From Scyliorhinus canicula (Eukaryota), in contig NC_052160.1 of NCBI RefSeq assembly GCF_902713615.1, positions 137,372,737 to 137,436,736 on the forward strand: a stretch of 64,000 bases of DNA. Reading direction: 5' to 3'. The notes below the pieces were generated by a model. It made no database searches and was not told where the DNA came from. It worked only from the letters and a program-made list of their open reading frames with translations. This document shows positions 7,192-29,330 of this stretch, one piece after another. Within the stretch, counting starts at the first letter, position 1; the number at the start of each line of letters is the position of its first letter. The position numbers and the translations under genes were made by a program.

Positions 7192-7503
7192 TTTCAGGTG
7201 CATTGTGGGCAAAGCCTACAGTAACGGGAATTGTGGGAAGAGCGATTGCGATAGATTGTCACTATGGTGCAGCGTACCAGAACCATGTGAAGTATTGGTG
7301 TCGCGGCTGGTCTCGCCGGTGTACTGTTATAGCAAAGACAAATTGGCAAAATGGAAGGTTTTCAATCACAGATGACAAGACACAAAGAATATTTGTTGTT
7401 ACGATGAAGGATCTTCGTTCAGGAGACACAGGATGGTACAGCTGTGGAATTGAACAGTCCAATCTTGATACAATGTTTTCCGTAAAGCTACAAATATCCG
7501 AAG
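7192..7503 (+). CDS. Exon: pIgR/CD300-like Ig V domain 1
   Basis: CTCAG acceptor and GAAG|GTACC donor, phase 1/1. Encodes VSGALWAKPTVTG..IDCHY..KYWCRGWSRRC..DTGWYSCG, with the extra C-C' cysteine pair typical of pIgR/CD300. Confidence 0.88.
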
Positions 7504-7572
7504 GTACCTTATTCTGAGTTATTTTCTTTGTTATTCTCGACTGAAATGTCTGGTCAATGGCCTGAATTTCAG

Positions 7573-7878
7573 ATGCATTATGGGCAGAAAGGAATGTGCA
7601 TGGAATTGTGGGAAGAGCGATCACAATAAATTGTCACTATCTTGCATGGTACAAGTCATATATTAAATATTGGTGTCACGGCACGACTCTCGTGTGTAAC
7701 GTTTTAGCAAAATCAAATTGGCAAAATGGAAGAATTTCAATCACGGTTAACAAGTCACAAACAACATTTGTTGTTACTATGGAGGATTTTCGCCCAGCAG
7801 ATGCAGGATGGTACAGCTGTGGTATTGAAACAGCAGTTCTCGATCCAATGTTTTCTGTGGAGCTTCAAACATCTTATG
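7573..7878 (+). CDS. Exon: pIgR/CD300-like Ig V domain 2
   Basis: TTTCAG acceptor and TATG|GTACA donor, phase 1/1. Encodes DALWAERNVHG..NCHY..KYWCHGTTLVC..DAGWYSCG. Confidence 0.85.
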
Positions 7879-9219
7879 GTACATTTCTCAGTTTTATTTT
7901 ATTACTTTCTATTGAAATGTCTGATCATTGTTTTCTCTGTGAGGAAACTTGGCTCCGATATCAGTGCAGGGTCTGGCAGATAGAGGGCAGCGGTCAGGGA
8001 AACTGGTTCTTGTTACACAAACCCAATTCATGTCATGGCCAACTTGTCACACTGCCAGGTGTTTGATTTCAGAAAGCAAGTTGTCAACAATGGTGTTAGT
8101 TCAGAGAATCATAGAAGTGTTACAGCACAAAAGGAGGCCATTCAGTCCATCTTGTCCCTGCTGGCCAAAGGACACCCAGGTGCCCTTTCTAATCCCACCA
8201 TGTTACGCCCCCGGTCTATAGCCCTGTATATTAGAGCATGTAATTGCATATCCAGGTACTTTTAAGAACAGCTTAGACTCTGCCTCCACCACCAACATGG
8301 GCAGCAAATTCCAGACACTCACTACTCTCTGCATTGTCATCAAATAGAATCAATCCACTGAATTTCACAGCTTCCATAGTCTTCCTGATATGTCGAGTGA
8401 CTCAAATAATCAATGCGACACTGAGGTCAGCCTAACAGAATTCAACTTTACAAAGGACATAGTGGGTGTGAGGGGAGGAAGGGCAGAGCTTGGCATGTGA
8501 GCATGACTGGGCCGTGGGTGTGGGTAATGGGCCATTGGGTTGATGATGGAATTGAGGGTAGTGGGAGACTGCGACGTGGCAGAAGGGGATGAGCAGAACC
8601 TTTTTAACTTGGCTTAACTTCAAACAAGTTGGTGAAAATCCAGTTTAATGTTCTTTTCATGGGGATTTTCTCAAGGGTCATTTTTTGAATTCCAGGTGCT
8701 CATTTTTCATTCTCATTAACTCCCTGATTAGGTGATGTTATTGCAATATTACAGTTTGCATTTATGAACTTTTTTTAGGGTTTCTTTCTTGTGTGCACAT
8801 AATTAAATCTTTTAATTTTAAATCTATAGAAAAGGTAATATTGCGAATTGATTATAAATAAATCTCCCATACTCCATATCGAACTGAAACTTCTGAACAT
8901 TTGGCACATGGGAATTGAATAGGAACAAGTCTCAACCGTGTCACCCTGGACGGTGGGGTTGGGAGGAGGTGGAAGTGAAGATGTTGGGCGGAATCTACCT
9001 GGCGCGTCCGAACAGGGACGTGATGAGGCCGCTCATGGGATTTACCCAGCTCGCCACACTTAGCGAGATCTAACGGGATCTCGCGAGACGTCATGATCTG
9101 GATCCCACCACAATGGGTGGGATCAGTATTTAGCATATCAGCACATTAGACTGAGGCAGCTAATCCTTCCTGGTCCGTGGTACCTTCACCGCCCACACAA
9201 ACCCAGTATTGTCTCATTC

Positions 9220-9770
9220 ACTCGACTAAAAATAGACTTGGGCATGAAAATCGGGAGTTTCTGAAACACAAACAAAAACTCCTGGAGCACCGGCCAGCCT
9301 TACCGTCTGGGCCCCCTCAATACCCCGCCACCCCCTCGAAGCCCTAAGTGTCAATGCCAACCGTTTAATCACTAGGGCACAGAGAAAAGGGGTGAGCGGA
9401 TAACCCTGCAACCCAAAATATTCCAAATTGAGATTATTGATCCGCACACTCCACACATTCAGACGCCTTCTCCACATCCATAGACATAACCACCTCCCCT
9501 ACCTGGTCCTTCGAGGGCATCATTACCTCATTCAATAATATCTGAACATTGGCCGATAGCTGCCACCCATTCACCAACCTCGTCTGGTCCGCCCTTATCA
9601 CTCCTGGCACACAATTCTCTATCCGCATTGCCAGCACCTTTAATTGGTTGGACATTGAAAATTGTAATGGACATATTAAAATAATTCTGCACAGTGTCAG
9701 GACCCAGAACTATCTTCCGTGTCCACTTCATATAACCTTGATCAAATAGCCATCCGTGGAGAGGTAGACA
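9220..9770 (-). mobile_element. L1/Tx1-clade ORF2 (RT) remnant
   Basis: Peptides RADQTRLVNGWQLSANV..MDVEKA and EYFGLQGYPLTPFLCALVI..ASRGWRG resemble degenerate L1 RT motifs. Homologous to 16990-18900. Confidence 0.7.
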
Positions 9771-10039
9771 TGACATTCCTATTTTTTTAATGAATGTTTT
9801 TTATTAGGTTTTTGAACAAAGTATGTTTACAGTTATGTGCACAGAATAAAATTTATATACATAGAAGAGAAGAAAACTAAAAAAAGAAAAAAAACGGGAA
9901 GGATATTGTGCACTAGCTCAACAACAGCAACACTATGCAGTTAGCAATATTATTTTTAACACATAAGTAGGCACCTGTTTGGTGGGGGGGGAAACTGGGG
10001 AGGTAGATATACATTTGGGTGCTGAAGAAACAATTACAG

Positions 10040-10850
10040 TAGTTATGTCCAATATAGAGTGGGCAATATGAGAATGGATCTGGTGTTGGTGTTGTTACTT
10101 GCTTCTCCCGGACGGTTTTCGCTGCCGTTGTCGTCTCGTGTTCACCTCCGCTTCGGCCGTTCGTCCCGTCTTTCTCCTGTATTGTCCTTGCTTTCTGTTC
10201 CTGTGTTTGCCAAGTTTGTTATCGTTTCCTGTGCTCTCCTTCCGGCTCCATTCCCTTGCCTCCCCCCCCCCCCCTCTGGTTCCCTCTATTGTTCCCTGGT
10301 TCCTCCCTCTTCCCCCCCCCCCCCCCCCCCCCCCCACTTCTGCCTCCCGTCTCCTGTGTTTGCCTTTCTTTTCTCTTAGGTTTAGCTGTCCCTCCCCCCC
10401 CTCCCCCACCCAATCTATCCCTCCCTCTCACGCTTTGGCTACTTTCCCCTGATTTTTGGCTACCTGGCTATTCTTCTGCTTGTTCGCTGGCCACAAACAG
10501 GTCCCGGAACAGTTGGGTGAATGGCTCCCACATTCTGTGGAAGCCGTCGTCTGACCCTTGGATGGCGAATTAGATTTTCTCCATTTGGAGAGATTCTGAG
10601 AGGTCGGACAGCCAGTCTGCAGCTCTGGGCGGTGCTGCTGACCGCCAACCGAACAGGATTCTACGGAGGGAGATCAGGGAGGCAAAGGCAAGGGTGTCCG
10701 CCCTCCTCCCCAGGAATAGATCTGGCTGGTCTGAAACCCCGAAGACCGCCACTATCGGGCATGGCTCCACCCTCACCCCCACCAATTTGGACATAGCCTC
10801 GAAGAAGGCTGTCCAGTACTCCACACGTCTGGGGCAAGACCAGAACATGT
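10040..10850 (-). mobile_element. L1-clade ORF2 C-terminus and 3'UTR remnant
   Basis: MFWSCP..WTAFFEAMSK..RRILFGWRS..EKI (ORF 10570..10848), followed by a G-rich 3'UTR. Confidence 0.75.
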
Positions 10851-11193
10851 GGGCAGCACGGTAGCATGGTGGTTAGCATAAATGCTTCACAGCTCCAGGG
10901 TCCCAGGTTCGATTCCCGGCTGGATCACTGTCTGTGCGGAGCCTGCACGTCCTCCCCGTGTGTGCGTGGGTTTCCTCCGGGTGCTCCGGTTTCCTCCCAT
11001 AGTCCAAAGATGTGCGGGTTAGGTGGATTGGCTATGCTAAATTGCCATTAGTGTCCAAAAAATAAGGTTAATGGGGGGGGGGGGGGTTACTGGTATAGGG
11101 TGGATACGTTGACTTGAGTAGGGTGATCATTGCTCGGCACAACATCGAGGGCCGAAGGGCCTGTTCTCTGCTGTACTGTTCTATGTTCTATGT
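10851..11193 (+). mobile_element. HE1-like SINE
   Basis: Full head and (TGTTCTA)n tail. Confidence 0.88.
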
Positions 11194-11346
11194 GGGCGTG
11201 ATTTGCCGGGCCTCCTTGGCACCATTCACAGACATGACATTCCTACATGGCTGACACTGGCCGAGATGCTGAAAGACAAAAATCATGATGAGTATTTGAT
11301 ATTGAGATGCTCAGTCAGTATCTGAATGTTTGTTTCTTTCCCACAG

Positions 11347-11670
11347 AATCCGTGTCTGTTCCTGTGTTGAAATTTCTATCGCCGCCAAATGTCTCACATT
11401 CTGGGGGCTCAGTGTCCGTCTCCTGTGAGTCTGTCCGGGGCTCCCTCCCCATTCAGTACACATGGACTGAAAGGACCCCGTCTGAAGAATCAAACATCGC
11501 CGACACCAATAAACTGGATCTCCGTTGTCGATCCTTCAAACAGCAACAGCAACAATATTACTGCACAGCCTCAAATACTCAAGGGAAACAATCCAGCGAA
11601 ATGGTGAATGTGATAGTCTTCAATAAAACAGAAAAGAGCTGCAGTTATGTGATACTAACTGAAACCATTG
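11347..11670 (+). CDS. Exon: Ig C2-type (FcRL/PECAM-like) domain, copy A
   Basis: TTTCCCACAG acceptor and ATTG|GTAAG donor, phase 1/1, 324 nt. Encodes SVSVPVL..VSCES..GSLPIQYTW..YYCTASN. Confidence 0.9.
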
Positions 11671-11779
11671 GTAAGATATATTCTATCCAAGCAATATGGT
11701 CAATGATGTTTATTCTTGTCTGTCTAAAATAGTCACTTGTTCACCTCCTTCAGTCACTCTGAGAACCTGCAACCAGAAA

Positions 11780-13481
11780 GGAATTGGAATGGAAAAGCAT
11801 CAACGGAATCCCACAACACTCTATTATTTAATAGATAATCTTTAAAATAGTCGTACCTATTTCGGTCGTATCTCAAGTCGTAAATAGTCGTTTCTCGACC
11901 TGAATCCGTTGACCACTTTGAAGGCCCCAACCAAACAGCAGTCTGGTAAAGCTGGTGTCGCAGAATCAACAGGTATCGGACCACTGCAGGTCTGGCACAG
12001 AAGCCTGATTAAGAACAGGCCAACACACGCCTGTATTCCATTTGCAGCAGTCCAGATGACTTTTAGTAAGATAAGATGTTAATGAAGACAAAGCAAACTT
12101 TGGAGAGGTTTTAAAGAATCATATTTCAGTCTTCAGAGGAATATTATTGTAGACCGGGAGAGGTTTAAGAGGGGCACTCAGAATCCGGAGAGGTGTTACT
12201 AATTTTTGTTCATGGGCAGTATCATTTGGCTGATAGTTGGGACAATTGAGCTCGATAAGATGAACTGATCCAAGACTGTGCTGTGGTCAATGTGCTTGAT
12301 CAAGCCTTGTCTGATTTCCTGCAGTCCAGGGAAAGGTTAATATTATCCAAGGAAATTCAATTAGCAAGACAGGCCAGGCCATGGAAACAGAACCAAGTTT
12401 TAATCCAGGGTGCAAGAGAAACTATTGACACAGTCCAGTTTGGTGAGAAAGAGAGTACCAGCATACCAACTTAAAAGCTGGTTCAGAATGAATAGGGAGC
12501 AGTCAGCACCATTGTCCATTGCTCCTGTTGTGGAGAGAAAGCATCCCGCCAGTGAAAAGATTGTCCTTCCAGACTCGGAGTGTCATTTGAGTCCTGCTGG
12601 AGGCAGGTGGAGCTGGTTTAGCACAGGGCTAAGTAGCTGGCTTTTAAAGCAGACCAAGGCAGGCCAGAAGCGCAGGTTCAATTCCCGTACCAGCCTCCCC
12701 GAACAGGCACCGGAATGTGGCGACTAGGGGCTTTTCACAGTAACTTCATTTGCAGCCGACTTGTGTCAATGAGCGATTTTCATTTCTTCAAAGCTCCTCT
12801 CCAAAATTTAACGGGAGGCCAATCAGATGCAAACAGTAATCAGGAAAGCGAAGACACAGGGGACCATAGCTTGCATTTCTTGGGCGAAGTTGAAAAATGC
12901 AAGAGGACCTTTTGGAGTCCGGGTATTATAGTCAATGGCCAGAAAACCAGTTTGAAACTAGACGTGGGACAGGGGTGTCAATTTTTCCACTGGAATCCAC
13001 TCAAGGTGCAAGTTGAAATGTTAGCAATAGAGGTCCCTAAAAACAAACCAGATCTTGCATCAGGTAAAAACGGTAATCCTCATTGAGACTTGTTTTTAAG
13101 AGATGTGTGTTTTTCACCCTGAGGGGAGGTTTCTTCTGAACAGAGAGAGGACCCAGACGGGAAGGCTAGAAACTGGTATTCATACTGAACTTTTGCACAA
13201 CAATAAAACAGTTGTGAATCGCAGAATGTCTTCTATTGCCTAATTCAGTGAATATATATCCACCTGTTTAACTCATTGCCATGCTTCATTACAATGGAAG
13301 GGAACTTACTGACGTTCTCTAGATTATTAATACTCACGGTTGCTCTGTATTAAGCACAAGCTTTGCAGCCTCTTTATTCACCAGTTCCAGTGGAAACCCA
13401 AGTCAATCCAGAACGGTTTAAACTAGTCTCCATAGTGGAAGCTCCACATTTGCAGCTACAGGTGGACATTCTGGATATTGT
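11780..13481 (+). mobile_element. Decayed Gypsy gag-protease-pol remnant, copy A
   Basis: Plus-frame peptides EGPNQTAVW.SWCRRINRYR, SYFSLQRNIIVDRERF, DELIQDCAVVNVLDQALSDFLQSRERL and FLGEV..IVNGQKTSLKLDVG (degenerate protease DTG motif). Confidence 0.65.
12607..12787 (+). mobile_element. Short (about 175 bp) tRNA-derived SINE, second family
   Basis: GGGGCTGGTTTAGCAC head and TTTTCATTTC tail. Related copies at about 15205(-), 21285(+), 47030(-), 48277(-) and 54133(+). Confidence 0.8.
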
Positions 13482-14975
13482 ATAGGAGGCAATACAAAGG
13501 TTGGCGTCATGCTTTCAGGCTGAGCGAAGATCTCCCCAATGTAGAGGAGACGCTATTGGGGGCAGAAAATACAGTCGACCAAATTGTAGGAAGTCCAAGA
13601 GAAATACTGCTTAACCTGAAAGTGAGTGATTGGGTCTTTGAATGGTGAGGCGGGAGGTGACTTATAACTTCTGCAATTGCAGGAGAAGTTGTCATGTGAT
13701 AGGATGGGCTTCTGGGCATGGTGGAGGAGTGGACCAGGGTGTCATGAAGGGAGCAGTCCCTGCAGAATGCTAACAGGGTGGATAACAAGAAGATGTTTTC
13801 TATGGTGGCATCATGCTGGAGTTGGGATAAATGGTGGAGGATGATCCTCTCAATGCAAAAGCCGGTGGGGTAGAAAGTGAGACCCGATCATGCCTCTGGG
13901 AGGAATGTGAAAGGCGAAGGACAAATGTGTGGGAGGAGGGTGGAAATCGGTTGAATTACCCTTCAACCACAAGGAGGGGAAAACTCGGTTAAGAAAAAAG
14001 GCAAACATTTCAGCAGCGCCATACCAGCAGGGCGGCATGGTAGCACAGTGGTTAGCACTGTCGCTTCACAGCTCCAGGGTCACAGGCTCGATTCCGGCTT
14101 TGGTCACTGTCTGTGTGGAGTCTGCATGTTCTCCCTGTGTAGGCGTGGGTTCCCGCCGGGAGTTCCGGTTTCTTCCCACAGTCCAAAGATGCCCAGGTTC
14201 GGTGGATTGCTGTGCTAAATTGTTCTTAGAGTCCAAAGGGGTTGGGTGGGGTTGCTGGTTTACAGGTATAGGGCGGGGGTGTGGGCTTAAGTCGGGTGCT
14301 CTTTCCAAGGGCCTGTGCAGACTCGATGGGCCGAATTCTGTGTCTACGTCTATCAGAAAAGATACAATACAGCTGGAGAAACTGGGAGAATGGGTACCCA
14401 TAGCCGCACCTTTATTTTCAGAAAGTGAGACAAGTTAAAGAAGAACATTTTGAGTGACAGAACAAGTTCAACTAGACGGAGGAGAGTGATGGTGGTTGGG
14501 GTTTGTCCAGGTCTCTGCTGAAGGAAGAAGTGATGACCCCTTAGACCCTCCTGGTGGTGGATGGAGGTGTAGAGGGATTGGACAACCCTTGTGAAGAGGA
14601 GGTGGTTCAGACCGGGGAACTGGAAATTGTTGATGTGATGTAAGGAATCAGAGGAATCCCGAATGCAGGTGGGAAGAGGCTGGACAAGGGGAGTGAGGAT
14701 GGAGTCAGGATTGGAAGAAATGAGTTCTGTGGGGCAGGAAGAAGCTGATGCAATGGGTCTACCAGGGCAGACCTGTTTGTGGATTTTGGGAAGGAGGTAC
14801 AAGCGGGCTGTGCAGGGTTGGTCGACTGTGAAATTGGAAGCTTTGGAGAGAAGATCTCCAGATATGACGAGGTCAGTGACCATCCTGGAAATAATGGCTT
14901 GATGTTTGGTGGTGGGATCATGATCCAGGGGGAGGGAGGAGGAAGTGTCTGAGTTTCAGATTCCAGTATCCATGG
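13482..14975 (-). mobile_element. Penelope-like remnant, copy B (no CR1 insertion; SINE at 14031-14338)
   Basis: ORFs 13507..13788 (AFCRDCSLHDTLVHS) and 14353..14883 (LYLLPKIHK, SLYTSI). Confidence 0.75.
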
Positions 14976-15485
14976 TAATTTTATTCGACTGTGAATCAGG
15001 TTTGACAATTAGGTTTGTAAAACTCTTGACGATGTCACTGAATGGCACACTGGAGTTAAACCCCACAATACGAGGCAGAACCCTAATTTCCAGGTTCCCC
15101 ATGCTCTCCCAGTAAGTCAAGAAAATACCCCAATTATTTCAAAAGTAAATCATTGGCTGTGAAATGCTTTGGGACACTGAGGCCATGAAAAGTGTCTATA
15201 TAATAATAATCGCTTATTGTCACAAGTGGGCTTCAATGAAGCTACTGTGAAAAGCCCCTAGTCACCACATTCCGGCGACTGTTCGGGGAGGCTGGTATGG
15301 GAATTGAACCCGCGCTGCTGGCCTTGTTCTACATGACAAGCCAGCTTTTTAGCCCACTGTGCTAAACCAGCCCCATATTAATGCTTACTTCCATTACAAA
15401 CTAGGTTGGATTTAACTCATTAAAATCTATCTGTTTGAATTAAGTAGTTATTTCCTGATCAATTTCTGAAATGTTGTCTCCTCAG

Positions 15486-15797
15486 TTTCAGATGCATTGT
15501 GGGCAGAAAAGAAAGTGCGTGGAATTGTGGGAAGAACGGTCACAATAAATTGTCACTATGATGCATGGTACAAGTCATATATTAAATATTGGTGTCACGG
15601 TACGACTATCACGTGTAAAGTTTTAGCACAAACAAATTGGCAAAATGGAAGAATATCAATCACTGATAACAAGTCACAAACAACATTTGTTGTTACTATG
15701 GAGGATCTTCGCCCAGCAGATGCAGGATGGTACAGCTGTGGTATTGAAACAGCTGTTCTCGATCCAAAGTTTTCTGTGGAGCTTCAAACATCTTACG
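15486..15797 (+). CDS. Exon: pIgR/CD300-like Ig V domain 3
   Basis: CTCAG acceptor and TACG|GTACA donor, phase 1/1. Encodes VSDALWAEKKVRG..KYWCHGTTITC..DAGWYSCG. Confidence 0.88.
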
Positions 15798-16989
15798 GTA
15801 CATTTCTAAGTTTTATTTTATTACTTTCTATTGAAATGTCTGATCATTGTTTTCTCTGTGAGGAAACTTGGCTCCGATATCAGTACAGGGTCTGGCAGAT
15901 AGAGGGCAGCGGTCAGGGAAACTGATTCTTGTTACACAAACCCAATTCATGTCATGGCCAACTTGTCACACTGTCAGGTGTTTGATTTCAGAAAGCAAGT
16001 TGTCAACAATGGTGTTAGTCCAGAGAATCATAGAAGTGTTACAGCACAAAAGGAGGCCATTCAGTCCATCTTGTCCCTGCTGGCCAAAGGACACCCAGGT
16101 GCCCTTTCTAATCCCACCATGTTACGCCCCCGGTCCATAGCCCTGTATCTTAGAGCATGTAATTGCAGATCCAGGTACTTTTAAGAACAGCTTAGACTCT
16201 GCCTCCACCACCAACATGGGCAGCAAATTCCAGACACTCACTACTCTCTGCGTTGTCATCAAATAGAATCAATCCACTGAATTTCACAGCTTCCATAGTC
16301 TTCCTGATATGTCGAGTGACTCAAATAATCAATAAGACACTGAGGTCAGCCTAACAGAATTCAACTTTACAAAGGACATAGTGGGTGTGAGGGGAGGAAG
16401 GGCAGAGCTTGGCATGTGAGCATGACTGGGTCGTGGGTGTGGGCAATGGGCCATTGGGTTGATGATGGAATTGAGGGTAGTGGGAGACTGCGACTTGGCA
16501 GAAGGGGATGAGCAGAACCTTTTTAACTTGGCTTAACTTCAAACGAGTTGGTGAAAATCCAGTTTAGTGTTCTTTTCATGGGGATTTTCTCAAGGGTCAT
16601 TTTTTGAATTCCAGGTGCTCATTTTTCATTCTCATTAACTCCCTGATTAGGTGATGTTATTGCAAGATTACGTTCTCCATTCATGTTCTGTTTTTAATGT
16701 TTCCTTTAGGGTACATAATCAAATCTTTTAATTTTAAATCTATAGAAAAGATGGTACTGCGAATTGACTATAAATAAATCTCCCATACTCCATTTCGAAC
16801 GGAAGATTCTGAACATTTGGCACATGGTAACTGAATAGGAACAAGTCTCAGTCGTGTCGCCCTGGACAGTGGGGAGGGAGGAGATGGAAGTGAAGATGTT
16901 GGCATGTCCTCCCACAATGTGCGGGATCAGTATTTAGTATATCTGTATATTAGACTGAGGCAACTAGTCCCTCCTGGTCCAGGGTACCT

Positions 16990-18900: not shown

Positions 18901-19016
18901 TAGACATGTCATTCCAACATGGCTGACTCCGGTCGAAATGTTGAAAGGCAAAACATGATGAGTATTTGATATTGAGAAGCTTAGTCAGTATCTGAATGTT
19001 TGTTTCTTTCTCACAG

Positions 19017-19340: not shown

Positions 19341-19487
19341 GTAAGAGATACTTTATCCAAACAATATGGTCAATGATGTTTATTCTTGTCTGTCTAAAAT
19401 AGTCACTTGTTCACCTCCTTCAGTCACTCTGAGAATCTACCACTGGCCAAATTCACTCTATGTGGCTCCTCACAGAACAAAGTCACT

Positions 19488-20130
19488 GGGGGTGATTCTC
19501 CCAAATGGAGCCCAAGTGTTCGCGCCGTTGTGAACGCTGTCGCCCACAGGGGGCCAGCACGGCGCTGGAGTGGTTCACGCCACTCTCGTCTCCCTTCCCG
19601 GCGCCGCGCCAACTTGTGCATGCGCGGGGGACTTCTTCTTCAGCACGCCGGCCCCGACACAACATGTCGTGGGGATTCAGGGGCCGGCCGCGCAGGAAAG
19701 TAGGTCCGGGGTGGGGGGGGGGGGAGGGGAGGGAAAGAGGCCAGCCCGCCGATCGGTGGGCCCCGATCACGGGCCAGGCCCCATCGGAGGCCCCCCTCCC
19801 CCCCCCCGGGGACGGAGCGCCACTCCCCCCCCCACCACCCGCCCCTGGCCCTTCGCGCCGAGTTCCCGCCGGCAGCGACCAGCGGTGAATGGCGCCAGCG
19901 GGACTCTGTCGTATCCGCGCGGCCCATTCGGGCCGGAGAATCGGCGGCCCTGCCGATTCCAGCAGCCCGCGGCCAGCGTCGCATCAAACACGCCGGCGCA
20001 AATGGTGCCGATTCTCCAAACCTCGGAGAATTGCGCACCGGCGTCGGGGCGTCGTGGCGGGGTTGCTCCAATTCTCCGGCCCGGCTCGGGGCTCGGAGAA
20101 TCCCCCCCCCCCCCCCCCCCCCTCCCCCCA
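19488..20130. mobile_element. GC-rich MITE-like element (GGGNGNGATTCTCC termini)
   Basis: GATTCTCC...GGAGAATC inverted ends. Absent from duplicate A; probable ACT TSD. Confidence 0.65.
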
Positions 20131-20499
20131 CTGATTTGCATTCATCGTCAACAATAAAATATCTTCAAGGCGTGTAAATTGAAAATGGAGTTTGAGTTAC
20201 GAAGCTTTGATTAATCTATTTTCCAATTTCTGGCAGACAGGATTGTGAAATGCAACCTTGAACTGGTGTGCCCTCGTTGTTGTAGTACAAAGGGTTAATA
20301 ATGGTCATGCTAATAGCTAGTACGCATCATCAGTGTTGTCAAATCACGTCTTCAGAACTGAAAGAGAGCTGTTTCTGGAAGGAAACTCATGATAATCTAT
20401 CCCTGCACATGGGGAAGGTTGATAATCAAACTTCTCGATGGTAATGGTAAAGTTACCGAACAGCAAGGATGCCTGACACAATTGCCAGTTGCAGGAAAG

Positions 20500-22800
20500 T
20501 GGAAGCCATGGAAAATGGAGCAGTGAGGGAAAAACCGTGGAAAAGAATTGGAAAGGAAAGCATCAACGGAGTTCCACAACAATCAATTGATTAAGAGATA
20601 ATCGTTGAAAAAATCCTACCTCCACCTGAATCCGTTGACCACTTTGAAGGCCCCAACCAAACAGCAGTCTGGTAAAGCCGGTGTCGCAGAATCAACAGGT
20701 ATCGGACCACTGCAGGTCTGGCACAGAAGCCTGATTATGGCTGGATGTGTCCCCAAGCCGGTGTAAAAACGCTGGCCTTTCCCTCCAGACTTTACTGAAA
20801 AAGATTTACAGCAATTCACTTACCTACAGGGGGCTGGCAGGGACCCGGAGTGATTCCCGCACATCCGGTTTCGAGTCCGCGCATGTGCACAGCGGCCGCG
20901 CCAAGCGCGATGACGGACTTGAACTGCGGACCTAAACCAAGCAACGAGGTCCCACCGATCTGCCCCATGCCAATTCATCTATTCGATCGCTGCCCCGGCC
21001 GCCCATAAGGCCCCCCCCCCTCCCCCAGTGATGGATCCCACCGCCCCCACCAGGAGTCCGCAGCCACTGTGCATGAGTCCCGACCGGCCAGACGTGGTTA
21101 GAACACGCCGTCGGGAACTCGGCCGGTCGGGAACGGAGTACCACTTAAAAGCCGATTCAGAATGAATAGGGAGCAGTCAACACCACTGTCCATTGCTCCT
21201 GTTGTGGAGAGAAAGCATCCCACCAGTGAAAAGATTCTCCTTCCAGACTCAGAGTGTCATTTGAGTCCTGCTGGAGGCAGGTGGAGCTGGTTTAGCACAG
21301 GGCTAAAAAGCTGGTTTTTAAAGAAGACCAAGGCAGGCCAGCAACACGGTTCAATTCCCGCACCAGCCTCCCCGAACAGGCGCCGGAATATGGCGACTAG
21401 GGGCTTTTCACAGTAACTTCATTTGAAGCCGACTTGTGTCAATAAGCGATTTTCATTTCATTAAGCTCCTCTCCAAAATTCAACGGGAGGCCAATCAGAT
21501 GCAAACATTAAGCAGGAAAGCGAAGGCACAGGGGACCATAACGTGCATTTCTTGGGCAAAGTTCAAAAATCGAAGAGGACCTTTTGGAGTCCGGGTATTA
21601 TAGTCAATTGCAGAAAACTAGTTTAAAACTAGACGTGGGACAGGAGTGTCAATTTGTCCACTGGAATCCACTCGAGGTGCAAGTTGAAATGTTAGCAATA
21701 CAGGTCCCGAAGAACAAACCAGATCTTGCATCAGAGTGAATTGAGAAAAGGTAATCCTCATTAAGACTTGATTTTAAGAGAAATTCGTTTTTCCCCCTAA
21801 AGGATTGGATTGGATTTGTTTATTGTCACGTGTACCGAGGTACAGTGAAAAGTGTTTTTCTGCGAGCAGCTCAACAGATCATTAAGTACATGGGAAGAAA
21901 AGGGAATAAAAGAAAATACATAATACGGCAACACAAGATAAAGGGGAGGTTTCTTCTGAACAGAGAGAGGACCCAGACGGGAAGACTAGAAACTGGTATT
22001 CGTAATGAACTTTTGCACAACAATAAAACAGTTGTGAATCGCAGAATGTCTTCTATTGCCTAATTCAGTGAATATATATCCACCTGTTTAACTCATTGCC
22101 ATGCTTCATTACACTGGAAGGGAACTTACTGACGCTCCCTAGATTATTGTTACTCACGATTGCTCTGTATTAAGCACAAGCTTTGTAGCCTCTTTATTCG
22201 CCAGTTCCAGAATCAACTCAGAACGGTTTAAACTAGTCTGCATAGTGGAAGCTCCACCTTTGCAGCTACCGGTGGACATTCTGGATATTGTTGTGATCCT
22301 TGAGTAGAGGGTGGGTGCGGACCGTATCCAGACCACCACTGACAACGGTGAGCAGACAGTGTCTGAACAGATACTGTATGAGGAAGGTAACCAACATATC
22401 ACTAATGGATGTGACCAAAACATTGTCGATGAGTGTGACCAGGATGCTAGTCCACCTGACCATTCAGGTAAGGACATCAATGACATGAAACAACCTGGTG
22501 CCGACATTAACTTTCACAAGGAGAAACCAGGCACTGAAGATCCGCCAATGTTGCAATTGCAGAACACAAAGTTGACTCCACAAACGCTGATATCAAGGCT
22601 GAAGAGGAAGTGGCTAAAACTGCTGATGTAGCAGCTGCTAATCTTACACACACCTCAGATGTACAAGGAAGGGTAACTTCTCTGAATCTAGTAGAGGCAG
22701 AAGAACAACAATCTACTCAGAAAAATACCGGATAGTAACAGAACCTGAGGTGATATTCAACACAATTTCTAATCTTAGCTCTCAAAAATTACAATACCTA
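20500..22800 (+). mobile_element. Decayed Gypsy remnant, copy B (internal deletion replaced by a GC-rich insert at about 20740-21150)
   Basis: Homologous to 11780-13481. Continues past the duplication junction into an acidic low-complexity frame (22311-22735, one frameshift). Confidence 0.55.
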
Positions 22801-22810
22801 ATGAACAGAT

Positions 22811-23120: not shown

Positions 23121-23337
23121 GGTATGACCTGCAAAAGGACAAGGGCTGTAGACAGTTGGGAACACACCACCTTGAAGTTCCCCTCCAAGTCACTCACCAT
23201 CTATATGTTGGCTATGAGCATTAAGCAGCAAAGGACATAAGAACATAAGAACATAAGAACTAGGAGCAGGAGTAGGCCATCTGGCCCCTCGAGCCTGCTC
23301 CGCCATTCAATTAGATCATGGCTGATCTTTTGTGGAC

Positions 23338-26300
23338 TCAGCTCCACTTTCCGGCCCGAACACCATAACCCTTAATCCCTTTATTCTTCAAAAAACTATC
23401 TATCTTTACCTTAAAAACATGTAATGAAGGAGCCTCAACTGCTTCACTGGGCAAGGAATTCCATAGATTCACAACCCTTTGGGTGAAGAAGTTCCTCCTA
23501 AACTCAGTCCTAAATCTACTTCCCCTTATTTTGAGGCTATGCCCCCTAGTTCTGCTGTCACCCGCCAGTGGAAACAACCTGCCCGCGTCTATCCTATCTA
23601 TTCCCTTAATAATTTTAAATGTTTCTATAAGATCCCCCCTCATCCTTCTAAATTCCAACGAGTACAGTCCCAGTCTACTCAACCTCTCCTCATAATCCAA
23701 CCCCTTCAACTCTGGGATTAACCTAGTGAATCTCCTCTGCACACCCTCCAGCGCCAGTACGTCCTTTCTCAAGTAAGGAGACCAAAACTGAACACAATAC
23801 TCCAGGTGTGGCCGCACTAACACCTTATACAATTGCAACATAACCTCCCTAGTCTTAAACTCCATCCCTCTAGCAATGAAGGACAAAATTCCATTTGCCT
23901 TCTTAATCACCTGTTGCACTTGTAAACCAACCTTCTGTGACTCATGCACTAGCACACCCAAGTCTCTCTGAACAGCGGCATGCTTTAATATTTTATCGTT
24001 TAAATAATAATCCCGTTTGCTGTTATTCCTACCAAAATGGATAACCTCACATTTGTCAACATTGTATTCCATCTGCCAGACCCGAGCCCATTCACTTAAC
24101 CTATCCAAATCCCTCTGCAGACTTCCAGTATCCTCTGCACTTTTCGCTTTACCACTCATCTTAGTGTCATCTGCAAACTTGGACACATTGCCCTTGGTCC
24201 CCAACTCCAAATCATCAATGTAAATTGTGAACAATTGTGGGCCCAACACGGATCCCTGAGGGACACCACTAGCTACTGATTGCCAACCAGAGAAACACCC
24301 ATTTATCCCAACTCTTTGCTTTCTATTAATTAACCAATCCTCTATCCATGCTACTACTTTACCCTTAATGCCATGCATCTTTATCTTATGCAGCAACCTT
24401 TTGTGTGGCACCTTGTCAAATGCTTTCTGGAAATCCAGATATACCACATCCATCGGCTCCCCGTTATCTACTGCACTGGTAATGTCCTCAAAAAATTCCA
24501 CTAAATTAGTTAGGCATGACCTGCCTTTAACGAACCCATGCTGCGTCTGCCCAATGGGACAATTTCTATCCAGATGCCTCGCAATTTCTTCCTTGATGAT
24601 AGATTCCAGCATCTTCCCTATTACCGAAGTTAAACTCACTGGCCTATAATTTCCTGCTTTCTGCCTACCTCCTTTTTTAAACAGTGGCGTCACGTTTGCT
24701 AATTTCCAATCCACCGGGACCACCCCAGAGTCTAGTGAATTTCGGTAAATTATCACTAGTGCATCTGCAATTTCCCTAGCCATCTCTTTTAGCACTCTGG
24801 GATGCATTCCATCAGGGCCAGGAGACTTGTCTACCTTTAGCCCCATTAGCTTGCCCATCACTCCCTCCTTAGTGATAACAATCCTCTCAAGGTCCTCACC
24901 TGTCATAGCCTCATTTCTATCAGTCGCTGGCATGTTATTTGTGTCTTCCACTGTGAAGACCGACCCAAAAAACCTGTTCAGTTCCTCAGCCATTTCCTCA
25001 TTTCCCATTATTAAAACTCCCTTCTCATCCTCTAAAGGACCGATATTTACCTTAGCCACTCTTTTTTGTCTTATATATTTGTAAAAACTTTTACTGTCTG
25101 TTTTTATATTCTGAGCAAGTTTACTCTCATACTCTACCTTACTCTTCTTTATAGCTTTTTTAGTAGCTTTCTGTTGCCCCCTAAAGATTTCCCAGTCCTC
25201 TAATCTCCCAGCAATCTTTGCCACTTTATATGCTTTTTCCTTCAATTTGATACTCTCCCTTATTTCCTTAGATATCCACGGTTGATTTTCCCTCTTTCTT
25301 CCGTCCTTCCTTTTTGTTGGTATAAACCTTTGCTGAGCACTGTGAAAAATCGCTTGGAAGGTTCTCCACTGTTCCTCAACTGTTCCACCATAAAGTCTTA
25401 GCTCCCAGTCTACCTTAGCTAGTTCTTCTCTCATCCCCTTGTAATCTCCTTTGTTTAAACACAAAACACTAGTATTTGATTTTACTTTCTCACCCTCCAT
25501 CTGTATTTTAAATTCCACCATATTGTGATCGCTCCTTCCGAGAGGATCCCTAACTATGAGATCATGAATCAATCCTGTCTCATTACACAGGACAAGATCT
25601 AGGACCGCTTGTTCCCTCGTAGGTTCCATTACATACTGTTCTAGGAAACTATCGCGGATACATTCTATAAACTCCTCCTCACGGTTGCCTTGACCGACCT
25701 GGTTAAACCAATCGACATGTAGATTAAAATCCCCCATGATAACTGCTGTACCATTTCTACATGCATCAATTATTTCTTTGTTTATTGCCTGCCCCACCAT
25801 CTCGTTACTATTTGGTGGCCGATAGACTACTCCTATCAGTGACTTTTTCGCCTTACTATTCCTGATTTCCACCCAAATGGATTCAACCTTATCCTCCATA
25901 GCACCGATGTCATCCCTTACTATTGCCCGGATGTCATCCTTAAATAACAGAGCAACACCACCTCCCTTACCATCCACTCTGTCCTTCCGAATAGTTTGAT
26001 ACCCTCGGATATTTAACTCCCAGTCGTGACCATCCTTTAACCATGTTTCAGTAATGGCCACTAAATCATAGTCATTCACGATGATTTGTGCCACCAAATC
26101 ATTTACTTTATTCCGAATACTACGAGCATTCAGGTAAAGTACACTTATGTTGGTTATTTTACCTCTGTTTTGAATCTTAACATCTCCAGTTTTATTCCTT
26201 TTGTTATTACTGGGCCTATTCACTGTGCTCCCCTCAGTCACTGTACCTTGTACTGTCGCCCTTATGGATTTCTGACTATGTCTTCTCTGCCTTGCACTTT

Positions 26301-26379
26301 TCCCCTTACTTCCTTTTGTTTCTGTCCCTGTTTTACTACCTTCCAACTTCCTGCATTGGTTCCCATCCCCCTGCCACAT
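23338..26379 (-). CDS. CR1 ORF2p, APE endonuclease plus reverse transcriptase (1013 aa, uninterrupted)
   Basis: YLNARS, ITETW, YRPP, GDFN, SDHN, QHGF, DFQKAFDKVPH, GVPQGSVLGP and FADD all lie in one frame. Confidence 0.95.
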   Translation of the reverse strand: MWQGDGNQCRKLEGSKTGTETKGSKGKSARQRRHSQKSIRATVQGTVTEGSTVNRPSNNKRNKTGDVKIQNRGKITNISVLYLNARSIRNKVNDLVAQIIVNDYDLVAITETWLKDGHDWELNIRGYQTIRKDRVDGKGGGVALLFKDDIRAIVRDDIGAMEDKVESIWVEIRNSKAKKSLIGVVYRPPNSNEMVGQAINKEIIDACRNGTAVIMGDFNLHVDWFNQVGQGNREEEFIECIRDSFLEQYVMEPTREQAVLDLVLCNETGLIHDLIVRDPLGRSDHNMVEFKIQMEGEKVKSNTSVLCLNKGDYKGMREELAKVDWELRLYGGTVEEQWRTFQAIFHSAQQRFIPTKRKDGRKRENQPWISKEIRESIKLKEKAYKVAKIAGRLEDWEIFRGQQKATKKAIKKSKVEYESKLAQNIKTDSKSFYKYIRQKRVAKVNIGPLEDEKGVLIMGNEEMAEELNRFFGSVFTVEDTNNMPATDRNEAMTGEDLERIVITKEGVMGKLMGLKVDKSPGPDGMHPRVLKEMAREIADALVIIYRNSLDSGVVPVDWKLANVTPLFKKGGRQKAGNYRPVSLTSVIGKMLESIIKEEIARHLDRNCPIGQTQHGFVKGRSCLTNLVEFFEDITSAVDNGEPMDVVYLDFQKAFDKVPHKRLLHKIKMHGIKGKVVAWIEDWLINRKQRVGINGCFSGWQSVASGVPQGSVLGPQLFTIYIDDLELGTKGNVSKFADDTKMSGKAKSAEDTGSLQRDLDRLSEWARVWQMEYNVDKCEVIHFGRNNSKRDYYLNDKILKHAAVQRDLGVLVHESQKVGLQVQQVIKKANGILSFIARGMEFKTREVMLQLYKVLVRPHLEYCVQFWSPYLRKDVLALEGVQRRFTRLIPELKGLDYEERLSRLGLYSLEFRRMRGDLIETFKIIKGIDRIDAGRLFPLAGDSRTRGHSLKIRGSRFRTEFRRNFFTQRVVNLWNSLPSEAVEAPSLHVFKVKIDSFLKNKGIKGYGVRAGKWS

Positions 26380-27324
26380 TAGTTTAAACCCTCCCCAACA
26401 GCTCTAGAAAACACCCCCCCTAGGACATCGGTTCCAGTCCTGCCCAAGTGCAGACCGTCCGGTTTGTACTGGTCCCACCTCCCCCAGAACCGGTCCCAAT
26501 GCCCCAGGAATTTGAATCCCTCCCTCTTGCACCATCTCTCGAGCCACGCATTCATCCTATCTATCCTGACATTCCTACTCTGACTAGCTCGTGGCACTGG
26601 TAGCAATCCTGAGATTACTACCTTTGAGGTCCTACTTTTTAGTTTAACTCCTAACTCCCTGAATTCCGCTTGTAGGACCTCATCCCGTTTTTTACCTATA
26701 TCGTTGGTGCCTATGTGCACCACGACAGCTGGCTGTTCCCCCTCCCCCCCCCAGAATGTCCTGCAGCCGCTCCGAGACATCCTTCACCCTTGCACCAGGG
26801 AGGCAACATACCATCCTGGAGTCTCGATTGCGTCCACAGAACCGCCTGTCTATTCCCCTTACGATCGAGTCCCCTATCACTATAGCCCTGCCATTTTTCT
26901 TCCTGCCCTGCTGTGCAGCAGAGCCAGCCACGGTGCCATGAACCTTGCTGCTGCCTTCCCCTGGTGAGCCATCTCCCTCAACAGTATCCAAAGCGGTATA
27001 TCTGTTTTGCAGGGAGATGACCGCAGGGGACACCTGCACTGCCTTCCTACTCTTGCTCTTTCTTTTGGTCACCCATTTTCTATCTCCCTCAGTAACCTTC
27101 ACCTGCGGTGTGACCAACTCGCTAAACGTGCTATCCACGACCTCCTCGGCATCACGGATGCTCCAAAGTGAGTCCATCCGCAGCTCCAGAGCCGTCAAGC
27201 GGTCTAACAGGAGCTGCAACTGAACACACTTCTTGCACGTGAAGGAGCCAGGGACAGTGGACGTGTCCCTGAGCTCCCACATCGCACACGAGGAGCATGA
27301 CACGGGTCTGGGATCTCCTGCCAT
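26379..27324 (-). CDS. CR1 ORF1p (esterase) with a single +1 frameshift in a 9-nt homopolymer
   Basis: CSSC..CKKC and GDSIVRG (26692..27324), then VVHIGTND and DGLHLG (26379..26780). The frames switch at the C-run 26744-26752. Confidence 0.85.
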
Positions 27325-28262
27325 GTCTTAAACCTTAGGTAAACTTATACAACTAGAATTTCAAAATAAAAATAAATAAATTAGACAATGAAAAGAAAAA
27401 GAGAGACTACTTATCAGTCACTTACCAGGGTAAAAAAGCACCTCCTTACACTCTGCACCGAATTACCTCACTGCACCAAATTACCAAGTTTAAATCTCCC
27501 ACTCTGTATGAGTCTCACTCCGGATGTGTCTCCTGGAAAAGAAAAGTCCTGGATAGTTAAGAATGTAATAATGCACATCTCCTCCAGTCATGATGAACTA
27601 TTTTGCAACCAACAATGTAAAACCTCCAGTTCCACCCCACTCTACAGCACAACTCTCTTAATTCCATTACATAATACCTTCCCGCGAAAATTTGTGCCCC
27701 CAGCGAATCACTTTTGCAAAGAGTATTTTGACGATTTTTGTACATTCAACCAGCATGTGGCTGTATGTGTTTGGTAAGCTTTCCCCTTCCAATCAATCCT
27801 TCGTCTTTCTGATGTGATCATTGACCTTTTTGTTTCTCTCCTTCCACCGCTGGATTGGGAGTGTGGTCAATCCAACCGCGTGTGAAATCCTGCCAAGAAT
27901 GTCTCATGTTCCACTGCGAGAGTCGGAAGCACGTCCACCGACAACTAAGCCCATTAAAAAGGCAATTCCCTTGAATTTTACATAACCTGTGCAATTTAGT
28001 GGTCACTGCACTGACCGCACGGACAGGTGCCATCATGAGATCGTGCCGTCCAGTTGTAACATCATCTGGGATGCTAACAATAGATGACACACATCCAGCC
28101 ATAAAGGTGCCAACGGGTGAGCTGGGTGTTGGGTTACGGGTATAAGGTGGATACGTGGGTTTGAGTAGGGTGATCATGGCTCAGCACAACATCAATGGCC
28201 TGTTCTGTGCTGTACTGTTCTATGTTCTATGTTCTATGAATATTATCTTCATGCCTCAATAG

Positions 28263-28335
28263 GTGATGAACATACCTGTGAAACTTTAACAGCAGGATCA
28301 CCAACACCTCCAGGATCTACATCTGTCAGTAAAAG
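28263..28335 (+). CDS. Exon: Cys/Thr/Pro stalk of the Ig receptor
   Basis: CAATAG acceptor and AAAG|GTACAG donor, 73 nt, phase 1 to 2. Encodes (G)DEHTCETLTAGSPTPPGSTSVSK(S) and bridges the phase-1 C2 exon to the phase-2 TM exon exactly. Confidence 0.72.
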
Positions 28336-29239
28336 GTACAGTCTTCTTATTGATGATGTTTCCATTTACATTGCTTTTAAATACAAATAAGTTATCAGTT
28401 TTGGCATAAGGCTTTACAATCATTTACCAGAATGGAAATGGTGACTGTGTTTATATAATGTTATTGTGTTGGCTTCCTTACAAAGTCGTTGTTACTGTTA
28501 GTGGAAATTCAGACAATGTAGTCAACATTTTTGTTTGCCTTCCCTCAGATGGTGCAGTTTTCATTATTCATGTGAATCACTTCACCATGCACTCAATCTC
28601 ATGGAGATGTAGCTGTCACACCCCAGAAATGGCAGATTTCCTGTGTGTTCTGGAGTATCTCTGACAGGGACATTTCAATCACTGTCATTGTCTCCTTCAC
28701 GGTTGTCGGGTTTTACAGGTTGTCCCCAAACTGAGAGGGTTAAAGGTCGTCTGCTTCCATTTGATTAAGAATTTCCTGTGAGGAGATGCACCAGGGAATT
28801 GTGGGATGATAAAAACAGGAAGTTCTGGAAAAACCAAGGTCCCTCAGCATCTGTCGAGAGAGGAACAGAGTTAACATTGAGTTGAATATGACTGTACTTC
28901 AAAACAGTGTTAGATGGTGTTATTCTGAGTTCCTTAGTCACTGAACAGATACGGTACCATTGCTATATTGCACCAGATAGTGCATCCACCCCAATGACCG
29001 GACAATTTATAAAATATTTCTTACAAGATTAATTAAATTTGCTCCATTAGATCTTTATCTAATAATCATGAAATTGATCAGTAAAACGTTAGTTTATTTT
29101 TCCAGCGGATGTGCCTTGTCTCTGCTGCTTTACGTTGCTACAATATGCTAAGGCCACAGCAGAAACAGGAGATTACATTTCAAAAGTGAAGTAGTCTCAT
29201 TTCCTGCAAATAATGTTGTAATTTTTCCGTTTTCCTCAG

Positions 29240-29330
29240 TTACATTATCTGGGGTGTGATCCGCTGGGGGCTCTTTACTCTGCTGGTGATTTGTGCTGTT
29301 TCAGTCACATGGTGTGCGGGAAAATCTAAG
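29240..29330 (+). CDS. Exon: transmembrane segment containing Arg
   Basis: TTTTCCTCAG acceptor and TAAG|GTGAGC donor, 91 nt, phase 2 to 0. Encodes YIIWGVIRWGLFTLLVICAVSVTWCAGKSK. Confidence 0.85.

Follow-up and report, generated by a model that had tools for sequence, protein, structure and literature searches.

The gene combines two V-C2 blocks with one stalk and one transmembrane exon

The 64,000-nucleotide stretch of small-spotted catshark (Scyliorhinus canicula) DNA analysed here, referred to as the window, carries a series of immunoglobulin (Ig) exons ahead of one stalk and one transmembrane (TM) exon, which raises the question of whether these exons form a single receptor gene and whether that gene represents an undescribed system. 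We conclude, with a probability of roughly 0.8, that they belong to one activating-type gene of the catshark MDIR cluster, with an upstream leader, five Ig exons, a stalk, an Arg-bearing TM segment and a tail, and with an origin by block duplication. The seven exons named in the original prediction are all present on the + strand with AG/GT borders and compatible phases, and splicing V1, V2, C2a, V3, C2b, stalk and TM exons in silico gives 581 codons without a stop. The features of the gene are as follows.

7192-7503, + strand: V1 exon, pIgR/CD300-type V-set; 312 nt, AG/GT, phase 1/1; Pfam V-set E 1.2e-9
7573-7878, + strand: V2 exon, V-set, local V duplicate; 306 nt, AG/GT, phase 1/1; V-set E 3.5e-10
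11347-11670, + strand: C2a exon, FCRL-type C2 Ig; 324 nt, AG/GT, phase 1/1; Pfam Ig_3 E 5.8e-7
15486-15797, + strand: V3 exon, V-set, copy B; 312 nt, AG/GT, phase 1/1; V-set E 2.3e-12
19017-19340, + strand: C2b exon, FCRL-type C2 Ig, copy B; 324 nt, AG/GT, phase 1/1; Ig_3 E 1e-7
28263-28335, + strand: stalk exon GDEHTCETLTAGSPTPPGSTSVSK; 73 nt, AG/GT, phase 1 to 2
29240-29330, + strand: TM exon with Arg inside the membrane span, YIIWGVIRWGLFTLLVICAVSVTW; AG/GT, phase 2 to 0
39493-39540, + strand: last coding exon, PLNDSGSHSLSNVGK plus stop; match to the tail of P0015, good acceptor, phase 0
6599-13481, + strand: duplication copy A (V1, V2, C2a and introns); collinear blastn blocks against copy B
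13721-22291, + strand: duplication copy B (V3, C2b and introns); collinear blastn blocks against copy A

The length of each Ig exon is a multiple of 3, and the conserved family core is kept in 5/5 Ig domains. Pfam assigns all three V exons to V-set (E 1e-9 to 2e-12) and both C2 exons to Ig_3/Ig_2 (E 1e-7 to 6e-7), and each V exon encodes four Cys in the pattern ...C HY...KYWC...C...WYSC. Because all Ig exons are phase 1/1, the frame is kept with any subset of them; symmetric phase 1 exons are usual in Ig genes and uninformative alone.

Between C2a and V3, a search for leader, stalk and TM exons of the family type found none; positions 14101-14137 were masked in the later analyses. The earlier claim that none lies between 11670 and 15486 holds for exons of the family type. 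A hidden leader between the two V-C2 blocks was considered and rejected, the generic candidates there all having poor donors. The sole leader inside the window (53336) is part of the next gene, and we infer that the leader exon of the present gene lies upstream of the window, at about 2.75 kb. As predicted, one stalk and one TM exon are common to both blocks, and the two would also have this leader in common.

Position 29330 is not the end of the gene, since a further coding exon, missed in the original prediction, is located at 39493-39540. It is the best match within 24 kb to the tail of P0015, an activating catshark protein encoded upstream (RefSeq 'polymeric immunoglobulin receptor-like', 304 aa), with a score of 63 compared to 25 for the runner-up. 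The stalk exon has the same position and the same Cys as the P0015 stalk, while the TM exon is 91% identical to that of P0015 and 67-79% identical to those of Mustelus activating forms, with the TM Arg conserved in both. The tail comprises 18 residues and lacks signalling motifs. In DAP12/FcR-gamma-coupled activating receptors, a basic TM residue pairs with an Asp of the adaptor, on which these receptors depend. The Arg-bearing TM segment combined with the 18-residue tail indicates an activating-type receptor.

The gene is by sequence a member of the MDIR family

The MDIRs (modular domain immune-type receptors) found in cartilaginous fish were reportedly described in skate in 2006. Skate MDIR2 (P0232), MDIR3 (P0191) and MDIR5 (P0202) appear in the same homologue lists as the catshark gene, and skate MDIR proteins match the V and C2 exons of the window at 46-65% identity (tblastn, E 1e-21 to 1e-53). 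The homologues amount to about 150 elasmobranch V-C2 proteins. Among the elasmobranch proteins fetched, the architectures VC (30), VCVC (26), VCVCVC (13) and VVCVC (6) were found, with up to 11 domains, and dozens of predicted proteins contain two to five V-C2 blocks.

Pfam and PDB matches bear out the assignment of the V domains to the pIgR/CD300/TREM type and of the C2 domains to the FCRL type. The best solved relatives of the V domain are pIgR (E 2.5e-38, three stretches) and CD300f/CLM-1 (E 3e-19), and PDB hits also include CD300a, TREM2 and NKp44; the V3 exon likewise finds pIgR and CD300, and C2b matches the FCRL5 structure 9loc with E 8e-40. Three traits of the family, whose description here is based on database names, our own domain mapping and PMC3031540, are found at this locus: a membrane-distal CD300/pIgR/TREM-type V domain with a second Cys pair, a modular organization in which the number of Ig domains varies among members (five Ig exons here), and a multigene cluster, with activating P0015 upstream and, downstream, ITIM tails on P0223 and on the 3' half of P0179. 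On these grounds we assign the gene to the MDIR family. The suggestion that the locus might encode an undescribed system was not borne out: the gene is an MDIR member, the V-V-C2-V-C2 order already exists in skate MDIR3 and V-C2 repeats are commonplace among the elasmobranch proteins fetched.

The V-C2 block was doubled with its introns, with no single clean event

In a self-comparison, copies A and B are 77-97% identical at the nucleotide level, introns included, over a block of about 8 kb. The segment 697-1577 probably also belongs to copy A, from which a LINE insertion would have split it off. The V1 region (7186-7559) locally repeats the V2 region (7561-7930) at 76%, and V2 and V3 share 92.8% nucleotide identity. 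C2a is 87-88% identical to the C2 exons of both inhibitory neighbours and only 77% identical to C2b, which is itself closest (90%) to a C2 of catshark P0187. The C2 exons of the two copies differ twice as much as their introns, and dN/dS between the copies is 0.72, a value that does not prove constraint on both.

The internal V-C2 duplication originally proposed stands insofar as the block was doubled together with its introns; it does not stand as a single clean event, C2a and C2b each being nearer to the C2 of other genes. Tandem repetition of a V-C2 block of about 8 kb would have produced the long ectodomain, probably through unequal crossing-over, either intragenic or among paralogues of the cluster. 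Later patchy exon exchange with neighbouring genes probably followed, and V1/V2 would represent a separate local duplication.

RefSeq fuses the first three coding exons to a distant gene

The RefSeq model P0179 (620 aa, gene range 126.8 kb) consists of a leader, V1 and C2a followed by a jump of more than 100 kb into an inhibitory gene. Residues 13-117 are identical to the V1 exon, junction codon included, and residues 118-224 are identical to the C2a exon, with the exact exon borders used and V2 skipped. Automatic annotation is known to be prone to such fusions in tandem families. The public RefSeq annotation of this gene is wrong in that its first three coding exons are fused to a gene more than 100 kb away. 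No annotated V3-C2b-stalk-TM product was found among homologue-list proteins of 167-532 aa or 357-1137 aa, and no database protein spans V2 to TM or joins copy A to copy B. A query with C2a for short junction-spanning protein fragments returned only 3 candidates, 0 from catshark.

The mature protein is predicted to carry four or five Ig domains

Judged from the exons, four or five Ig domains are most likely present in the mature protein, in the order V1-(V2)-C2a-V3-C2b, and we think that V2 is the exon least likely to be used. That the main product is the full five-domain V1-V2-C2a-V3-C2b protein, as first proposed, can be held only tentatively. All five Ig exons are open, in phase and flanked by AG/GT, V2 retains 32/34 conserved family positions, which is inside the usual family range, and a V-V junction through the same inner acceptor ('...QISN|G ALWA...') is present in Mustelus and Rhinoraja gene models, with skate MDIR3 providing a VVCVC protein. 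However, the native acceptor of V2 is lost and an inner 'tttcag' with a pyrimidine tract of 9/18 is needed instead, while V1 and V2 are separated by an intron of just 69 nt, whose branch-point candidates are located 37-41 nt from the V1 donor. V2 has also accumulated 9-10 private residue changes compared to 1-4 in sister domains, among them an Asp-to-Val and a Leu-to-Phe replacement at near-invariant sites, and is absent from P0179.

Sequence-word shares in read runs also bear on exon usage. In runs guessed to be RNA, the V3 word share is 0.31-0.59 and that of V1+V2 reaches up to 0.33, with only 5% of the V1+V2 words common to copy B. Over runs, the V1+V2 share never exceeds 0.43 (study P5), equal to one exon's worth, which counts against the five-domain product though it can be explained otherwise. 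The ceiling was rejected as evidence for skipping of V2: the best P5 runs differ between the two queries, a result that short-fragment DNA data would equally give.

An unlikelier arrangement is that of alternative heads on one signalling stem, with V1 and V2 mutually exclusive or blocks A and B chosen alternatively. Splicing has to respect a minimum distance between 5' splice site and branch point, and the short V1-V2 intron may therefore impede the joining of both exons. The V3 and V1+V2 word shares are uncoupled in X19 (0.00 and 0.23, respectively) and X4 (0.53 and 0.08), and with phase 1/1 throughout every exon subset would stay in frame. Uneven word shares can, however, be explained by low coverage or near-identical paralogues, and the symmetric phase, being the norm for Ig genes, gives no support by itself.

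Use of copy B only, yielding a two-domain leader-V3-C2b-stalk-TM receptor like P0015 with copy A unused or decaying, is more doubtful again. VC is the commonest architecture and that of the nearest activating gene, P0015; V2 is faster-evolving, the dN/dS value between the copies fits and C2a lacks a usual Cys, having a His at a site occupied by Cys in 48/56 family domains (86%). In contrast, the acceptor of V1, which comes first after the leader, is strong and the same as that of V3, V1 shows just 1 private change compared to its 92% twin, and the exons of copy A are free of stops, frameshifts and lost splice sites. P0179 moreover splices leader, V1 and C2a, and V1/V2-specific words occur in the runs guessed to be RNA. 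The Cys missing from C2a is likewise missing in 7 other family domains. Clear decay of V2 or C2a was considered and rejected, their core deviations (2 and 1, respectively) being inside the family range.

It is very improbable that RefSeq is right and that leader, V1 and C2a join a downstream V-C2-stalk-TM-ITIM unit across more than 100 kb, with V3 to TM excluded. The existence of model P0179 speaks for it; against it, the model bypasses five good next-in-line exons and engulfs the whole of gene P0223.

The V domains mirror those of two inhibitory neighbours

Returning to a single activating-type gene with four or five Ig domains, V3 is 94% identical to the V domain of the next inhibitory gene downstream, P0223, and V1 is 92% identical to that of the second inhibitory gene downstream, represented by the 3' half of P0179. 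The receptor would be located in the leukocyte membrane and contact its ligand through the pIgR/CD300-type V heads, while the TM Arg would recruit an ITAM adaptor (DAP12- or FcR-gamma-like) for signalling. It may serve as an activating counterpart to this downstream inhibitory pair. A further idea, which we regard as a long shot, is a composite, splice-tunable activating counterweight that presents near-copies of two inhibitory heads in one chain, with V1 and V2 possibly mutually exclusive because the 69-nt intron is too short for easy removal. We know of no such design described for paired receptor families.

The analysis corrects the annotation of a gene whose V2, V3, C2b, stalk, Arg-TM and tail carry no RefSeq model. 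It also offers a dated, intron-level example of domain gain in MDIRs, in which repetition of a block of about 8 kb would have been followed by exon swaps with paralogues. To comparative immunology it contributes a multi-block MDIR member of the activating type whose heads mirror those of inhibitory neighbours, a pattern expected for paired receptors under pathogen pressure. The locus does not constitute a new kind of system, ectodomain lengthening by V-C2 copying being common in the MDIR family.

Comparison with known receptor systems

The closest named counterpart is skate MDIR3 (Rostroraja eglanteria, 701 aa), whose V-V-C2-V-C2 order equals that of the catshark gene and whose V and C2 domains are of the same pIgR/CD300 and FCRL types. 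MDIR3 differs in having a plain TM segment and, in a tail of 119 residues, three ITIM-like motifs, making it inhibitory, whereas the catshark gene combines an Arg-TM with 18 tail residues. The V-V pair of MDIR3 is independent: its domains d1 and d2 are sisters within a skate clade while catshark V1 and V2 fall into different shark clades. Within catshark, P0015 shares a near-identical tail and the same TM Arg, and its C2 is 75-82% identical to those of the present gene compared to only 51-56% for V; it consists of one V-C2 block instead of two blocks and an extra V. P0187 (RefSeq 'Fc receptor-like protein 5', 613 aa, VCVC) has a V-C2 repeat inside one RefSeq-accepted protein. It is inhibitory with a long ITIM tail, in contrast to the activating-type gene described here, and its repeat is younger given that its two blocks are almost identical.

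Among more distant systems, CD300 proteins have no C2 and just one V domain, carried by a mucin-like stalk, whereas three V and two C2 exons precede the stalk here. The pIgR ectodomain contains V-type domains only and is followed by a long transcytosis tail, in contrast to the two FCRL-type C2 domains and short tail of the catshark gene. Neither CD300 nor pIgR shows its alternation of V and FCRL-type C2 domains, and the C2-only ectodomain of FCRL lacks its pIgR/CD300-type V-sets. A V domain with an extra Cys pair is common to CD300a/c, pIgR and the catshark gene, and CD300a/c comprise activating and inhibitory members with near-identical heads, a pattern comparable to that of the catshark pairs.

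A duplicated-module receptor gene extends beyond the predicted exons at both ends
The receptor gene with duplicated V and C2 modules is real. It lies in vertebrate DNA with abundant LINE and SINE copies, assigned to the small-spotted catshark (Scyliorhinus canicula) through the names that matching proteins bear in databases. All seven forward-strand exons of the original prediction were confirmed with their borders and phases. AG/GT borders are present at 7/7 exons from V1 to TM and 581 codons are open once these are joined.

Coding exons of the receptor gene, and the one family-type leader in the window
7192-7503, + strand, V1 exon, 312 nt, phase 1/1
7573-7878, + strand, V2 exon, 306 nt, phase 1/1
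11347-11670, + strand, C2a exon, 324 nt, phase 1/1
15486-15797, + strand, V3 exon, 312 nt, phase 1/1
19017-19340, + strand, C2b exon, 324 nt, phase 1/1
28263-28335, + strand, stalk exon, 73 nt, phase 1 to 2
29240-29330, + strand, TM exon, 91 nt, phase 2 to 0
39493-39540, + strand, last coding exon, PLNDSGSHSLSNVGK then stop, good acceptor ahead, phase 0
53336-53372, + strand, family leader exon MRILILLICSLP, GT donor

In Pfam, V-set is the match for the V exons, at E 1e-9 to 2e-12, and Ig_3/Ig_2 that for the C2 exons, at E 1e-7 to 6e-7. Among solved structures, the V domain is nearest to pIgR and CD300f/CD300a, followed by TREM2 and NKp44; for the C2 domain the nearest is FCRL5, with E 8e-40 across three stretches. 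Since exon borders, Pfam and structure matches agree, the predicted exons stand, as does the description of the V domains as pIgR/CD300/TREM-type and of the C2 domains as FcRL-like. No additional copies of the five Ig domains were found by tblastn across all 64 kb.

The predicted gene range of 7192-29330 contains the right exons but is incomplete at both gene ends. Scanning 29331-53300 with the 15-residue tail of P0015, an activating catshark V-C2 gene upstream, gave a score of 63 at 39493, with a runner-up of 25. This last exon ends the protein after PLNDSGSHSLSNVGK, so the cytoplasmic part consists of KSK and 15 residues; it lacks a tyrosine motif. The TM sequence, YIIWGVIRWGLFTLLVICAVSVTW, carries an Arg within the span, and the TM exon shares 91% identity with its P0015 counterpart and 67-79% with likewise short-tailed Mustelus forms. 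The leader at 53336, the sole family-type leader within the window, is the first coding exon of P0223, the next inhibitory V-C2 gene downstream (408 aa), whose V exon lies past the window end. P0179, a RefSeq model using V1 and C2a, opens with a MRILILLICSLP-type leader followed by V1 and starts 56,088 bases ahead of P0223 in the RefSeq gene ranges. These ranges would place the leader of the gene studied here ~2.75 kb before window base 1.

No leader, stalk or TM exon is detected between the two blocks
The region between C2a and V3 (11671-15485) was examined for a hidden leader, stalk or TM exon. A blastn search with the leader exon and its flanks, a fuzzy search at protein level with three leaders of the family and tblastn with full-length activating and inhibitory relatives all gave no match in 11671-15485. 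The tblastn search was sensitive enough, because the same relatives recovered the 35-residue TM exon at 29226-29330 (E 3e-14). The claim that no such exon lies between C2a and V3 is thus borne out, and no hidden leader or TM exon was found to part the blocks. Two weak candidates for generic Met-hydrophobic-donor exons in 11671-15485 were rejected, both having poor donors and lying within a repeat. Positions 14101-14137 fall within the repeat-rich portion of the C2a-V3 intron.

The block repeat includes introns and carries signs of exon exchange
Self-comparison of the window resolved collinear blocks between copy A (V1, V2 and C2a) and copy B (V3 and C2b), introns included.

Collinear blocks of copy A and copy B
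A 697-1577, B 13721-14590, 97.5% identity
A 6599-6987, B 14583-14972, 92.6% identity
A 7080-7191, B 15375-15485, about 88% identity (last 60 nt 92%)
A 7561-8987, B 15480-16902, 94.6% identity
A 11230-11768, B 18902-19438, 88.9% identity
A 12464-13481, B 21139-22291, 91-92.5% identity

In copy A, ~5 kb of LINE sequence parts the first two blocks, which are contiguous in copy B, so the duplicated unit measures ~8.5 kb. Its upstream limit lies ~1.8 kb ahead of the V exon; past the C2 exon it continues for ~1.8 kb in copy A and ~2.9 kb in copy B. The interrupting LINE is an older CR1/L2-like element on the - strand (about 1600-6100, ORF 5150-6085) whose ORF1 has a GDSL-esterase domain. Because it splits copy A only (697-1577 from 6599 onward), either its insertion postdates the duplication or copy B has lost it. 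A second CR1/L2-like LINE occupies 23338-27324 (- strand), within the intron between C2b and the stalk exon. Its ORF2 of 1013 aa, encoding an APE-type endonuclease and a reverse transcriptase, is open, ORF1 pieces lie upstream of it, and the element looks recently active.

Within copy A, the stretches 7186-7559 (V1 plus 56 nt of 3' flank) and 7561-7930 (V2 plus flank) match each other at 76%. V3 combines a V1-like upstream flank with a V2-like body and downstream flank, so either a V1-type exon was gained in copy A or one was lost from copy B through crossing-over where the exon starts are similar.

Base differences amount to 13.0% between the C2 exons and 6.9% between their introns (Fisher p = 8e-4), and dS between C2a (11347-11670) and C2b (19017-19340) is 0.18, above the intron divergence. 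In a domain tree, C2a joins the C2 domains of the two downstream inhibitory genes (support 100/98) at 87-88% identity, compared with only 77% to C2b, while the nearest relative of C2b is a C2 of the catshark paralogue P0187 (90%). On the V side, the P0223 domain forms a group with V2 and V3 (94% identity to V3), and V1 pairs with the second V domain of P0179 (92%). The greater divergence of the C2 exons than of the introns, with each C2 nearer to that of another gene, points to paralogues having exchanged exon-sized pieces. As V and C2 exons are nearest to domains of different neighbours, genes of the cluster appear to share and exchange V-C2 blocks. The proposed internal V-C2 duplication therefore holds as a block repeat with introns but not as a single clean internal event, the C2 exons being nearer to other genes. 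The A/B repeat could equally be the product of unequal crossing-over between two neighbouring genes.

Four and five Ig domains are almost equally likely for the main product
Seven runs from four studies, guessed to be RNA, contain 0.06-0.59 of the V3 sequence words, and the leading ones contain 0.24-0.33 of the words of the V1+V2 stretch. Because only 5% of V1+V2 words occur in copy B, these runs must include some copy A exon. In runs of study P5, V3 is nearly complete (0.88-1.0) and V1+V2 (7192-7878) reaches at most 0.43, one exon's worth. The best P5 runs differ between the two queries, so the 0.43 ceiling fits DNA data of short fragments no less than skipping of an exon, and a structural variant could also account for it.

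The 'tttcag' with which V2 opens corresponds by homology to exonic bases 1-6 of V1 and V3, so V2 has lost its native 'cctcag' acceptor. It can be joined only via the inner AG chosen in the original prediction. This non-native acceptor has a pyrimidine tract of 9/18, and the V1-V2 intron measures 69 nt, with plausible branch points 37-41 nt from the donor. Private residue changes number 9-10 in V2 and 1-4 in the sister domains (Tajima chi-square 3.8 to 6.4); those in V2 include, at near-invariant columns, an Asp to Val and a Leu to Phe change. These features argue against use of V2; to a main product of four domains with V2 skipped we assign a probability of about 0.3. A five-domain main product is almost as probable: the V2 frame is open, 32/34 conserved positions are retained, inside the family's normal range, and Mustelus and Rhinoraja models show V-V junctions via the same inner acceptor. 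Alternative or mutually exclusive use of the Ig exons is doubtful.

Use of copy B alone is unlikely, given that V1 shares its acceptor with V3, comes first after the leader and, with its 92% twin as reference, shows a single private change, and that C2a has good splice sites and a single deviation at conserved columns. Codon 17 of C2a (11395-11397) encodes His; Cys is found there in 48/56 family C2 domains and is also missing in 7 others.

That the long RefSeq jump to a distant gene is real is highly improbable; P0179 (LOC119978458, 620 aa) is probably a merged model. After its leader, residues 13-117 and 118-224 match V1 and C2a of the window exactly. The rest is not encoded in the window and comprises a V with 92% identity to V1, a C2 with 83% identity to C2a, and a tail with ITIM. 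These second V-C2-TM-ITIM exons belong to a gene >100 kb downstream. The P0179 gene range of 126.8 kb covers most of the window and beyond, encloses the entire P0223 gene and omits V2, V3, C2b, stalk, TM and tail. Database searches among proteins 59-187, 167-532 and 357-1137 residues long found no protein with V2, V3, C2b or the stalk/TM of this gene.

The gene is, by sequence, a new activating member of the MDIR family
The gene combines an Arg-bearing TM and a short motif-free tail with V domains near-identical to those of inhibitory neighbours, in a cluster of MDIR (modular domain immune-type receptor) genes. CD300a/c, KIR, SIRP and PILR are paired receptors, and by analogy with them the TM Arg would recruit a DAP12- or FcR-gamma-type ITAM adaptor. 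The receptor may then activate leukocytes upon binding ligands like those of its inhibitory neighbours. If the blocks are co-expressed, it would be distinctive in uniting, on a single activating chain, heads almost identical to those of two different inhibitory receptors. The corrected gene model, the RefSeq mis-annotation and the evidence for exon exchange within the cluster are useful new points.

With C2b as query against 1.84 billion representatives (E up to 1e-10), 151 proteins were found, the top ones all elasmobranch and alternating this V type with this C2 type. Relatives bear generic names such as "polymeric immunoglobulin receptor-like", "Fc receptor-like protein 5" and "CMRF35-like molecule 8", and the homologue lists also contain the cDNA-derived skate "Modular domain immune-type receptor" 2, 3 and 5. 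The MDIR family has been known since 2006. MDIRs are multigene activating and inhibitory skate receptors similar to CD300, TREM, FCAR and pIgR (PMC3031540). Domain mapping of the 251 retrieved proteins yielded the architectures VC (30 proteins), VCVC (26), VCVCVC (13) and VVCVC (6), as well as VVC, VCVVC, VVCVCVCVC and one 11-domain Mustelus model.

The suggestion of an undescribed system consequently falls: the family is MDIR, and block repetition is its ordinary evolution. Skate MDIR3 (701 aa) already has the predicted order V-V-C2-V-C2, but its tail, unlike that of the catshark gene, carries an ITIM. Its V-V pair arose independently, because its two N-terminal V domains are sisters inside a skate clade of the domain tree. 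Catshark P0187 (VCVC), with two almost identical blocks, is a younger instance of the same block-repeat process. With many multi-block relatives and the VVCVC order of MDIR3, the V-C2 repeat design is both known and recurrent.
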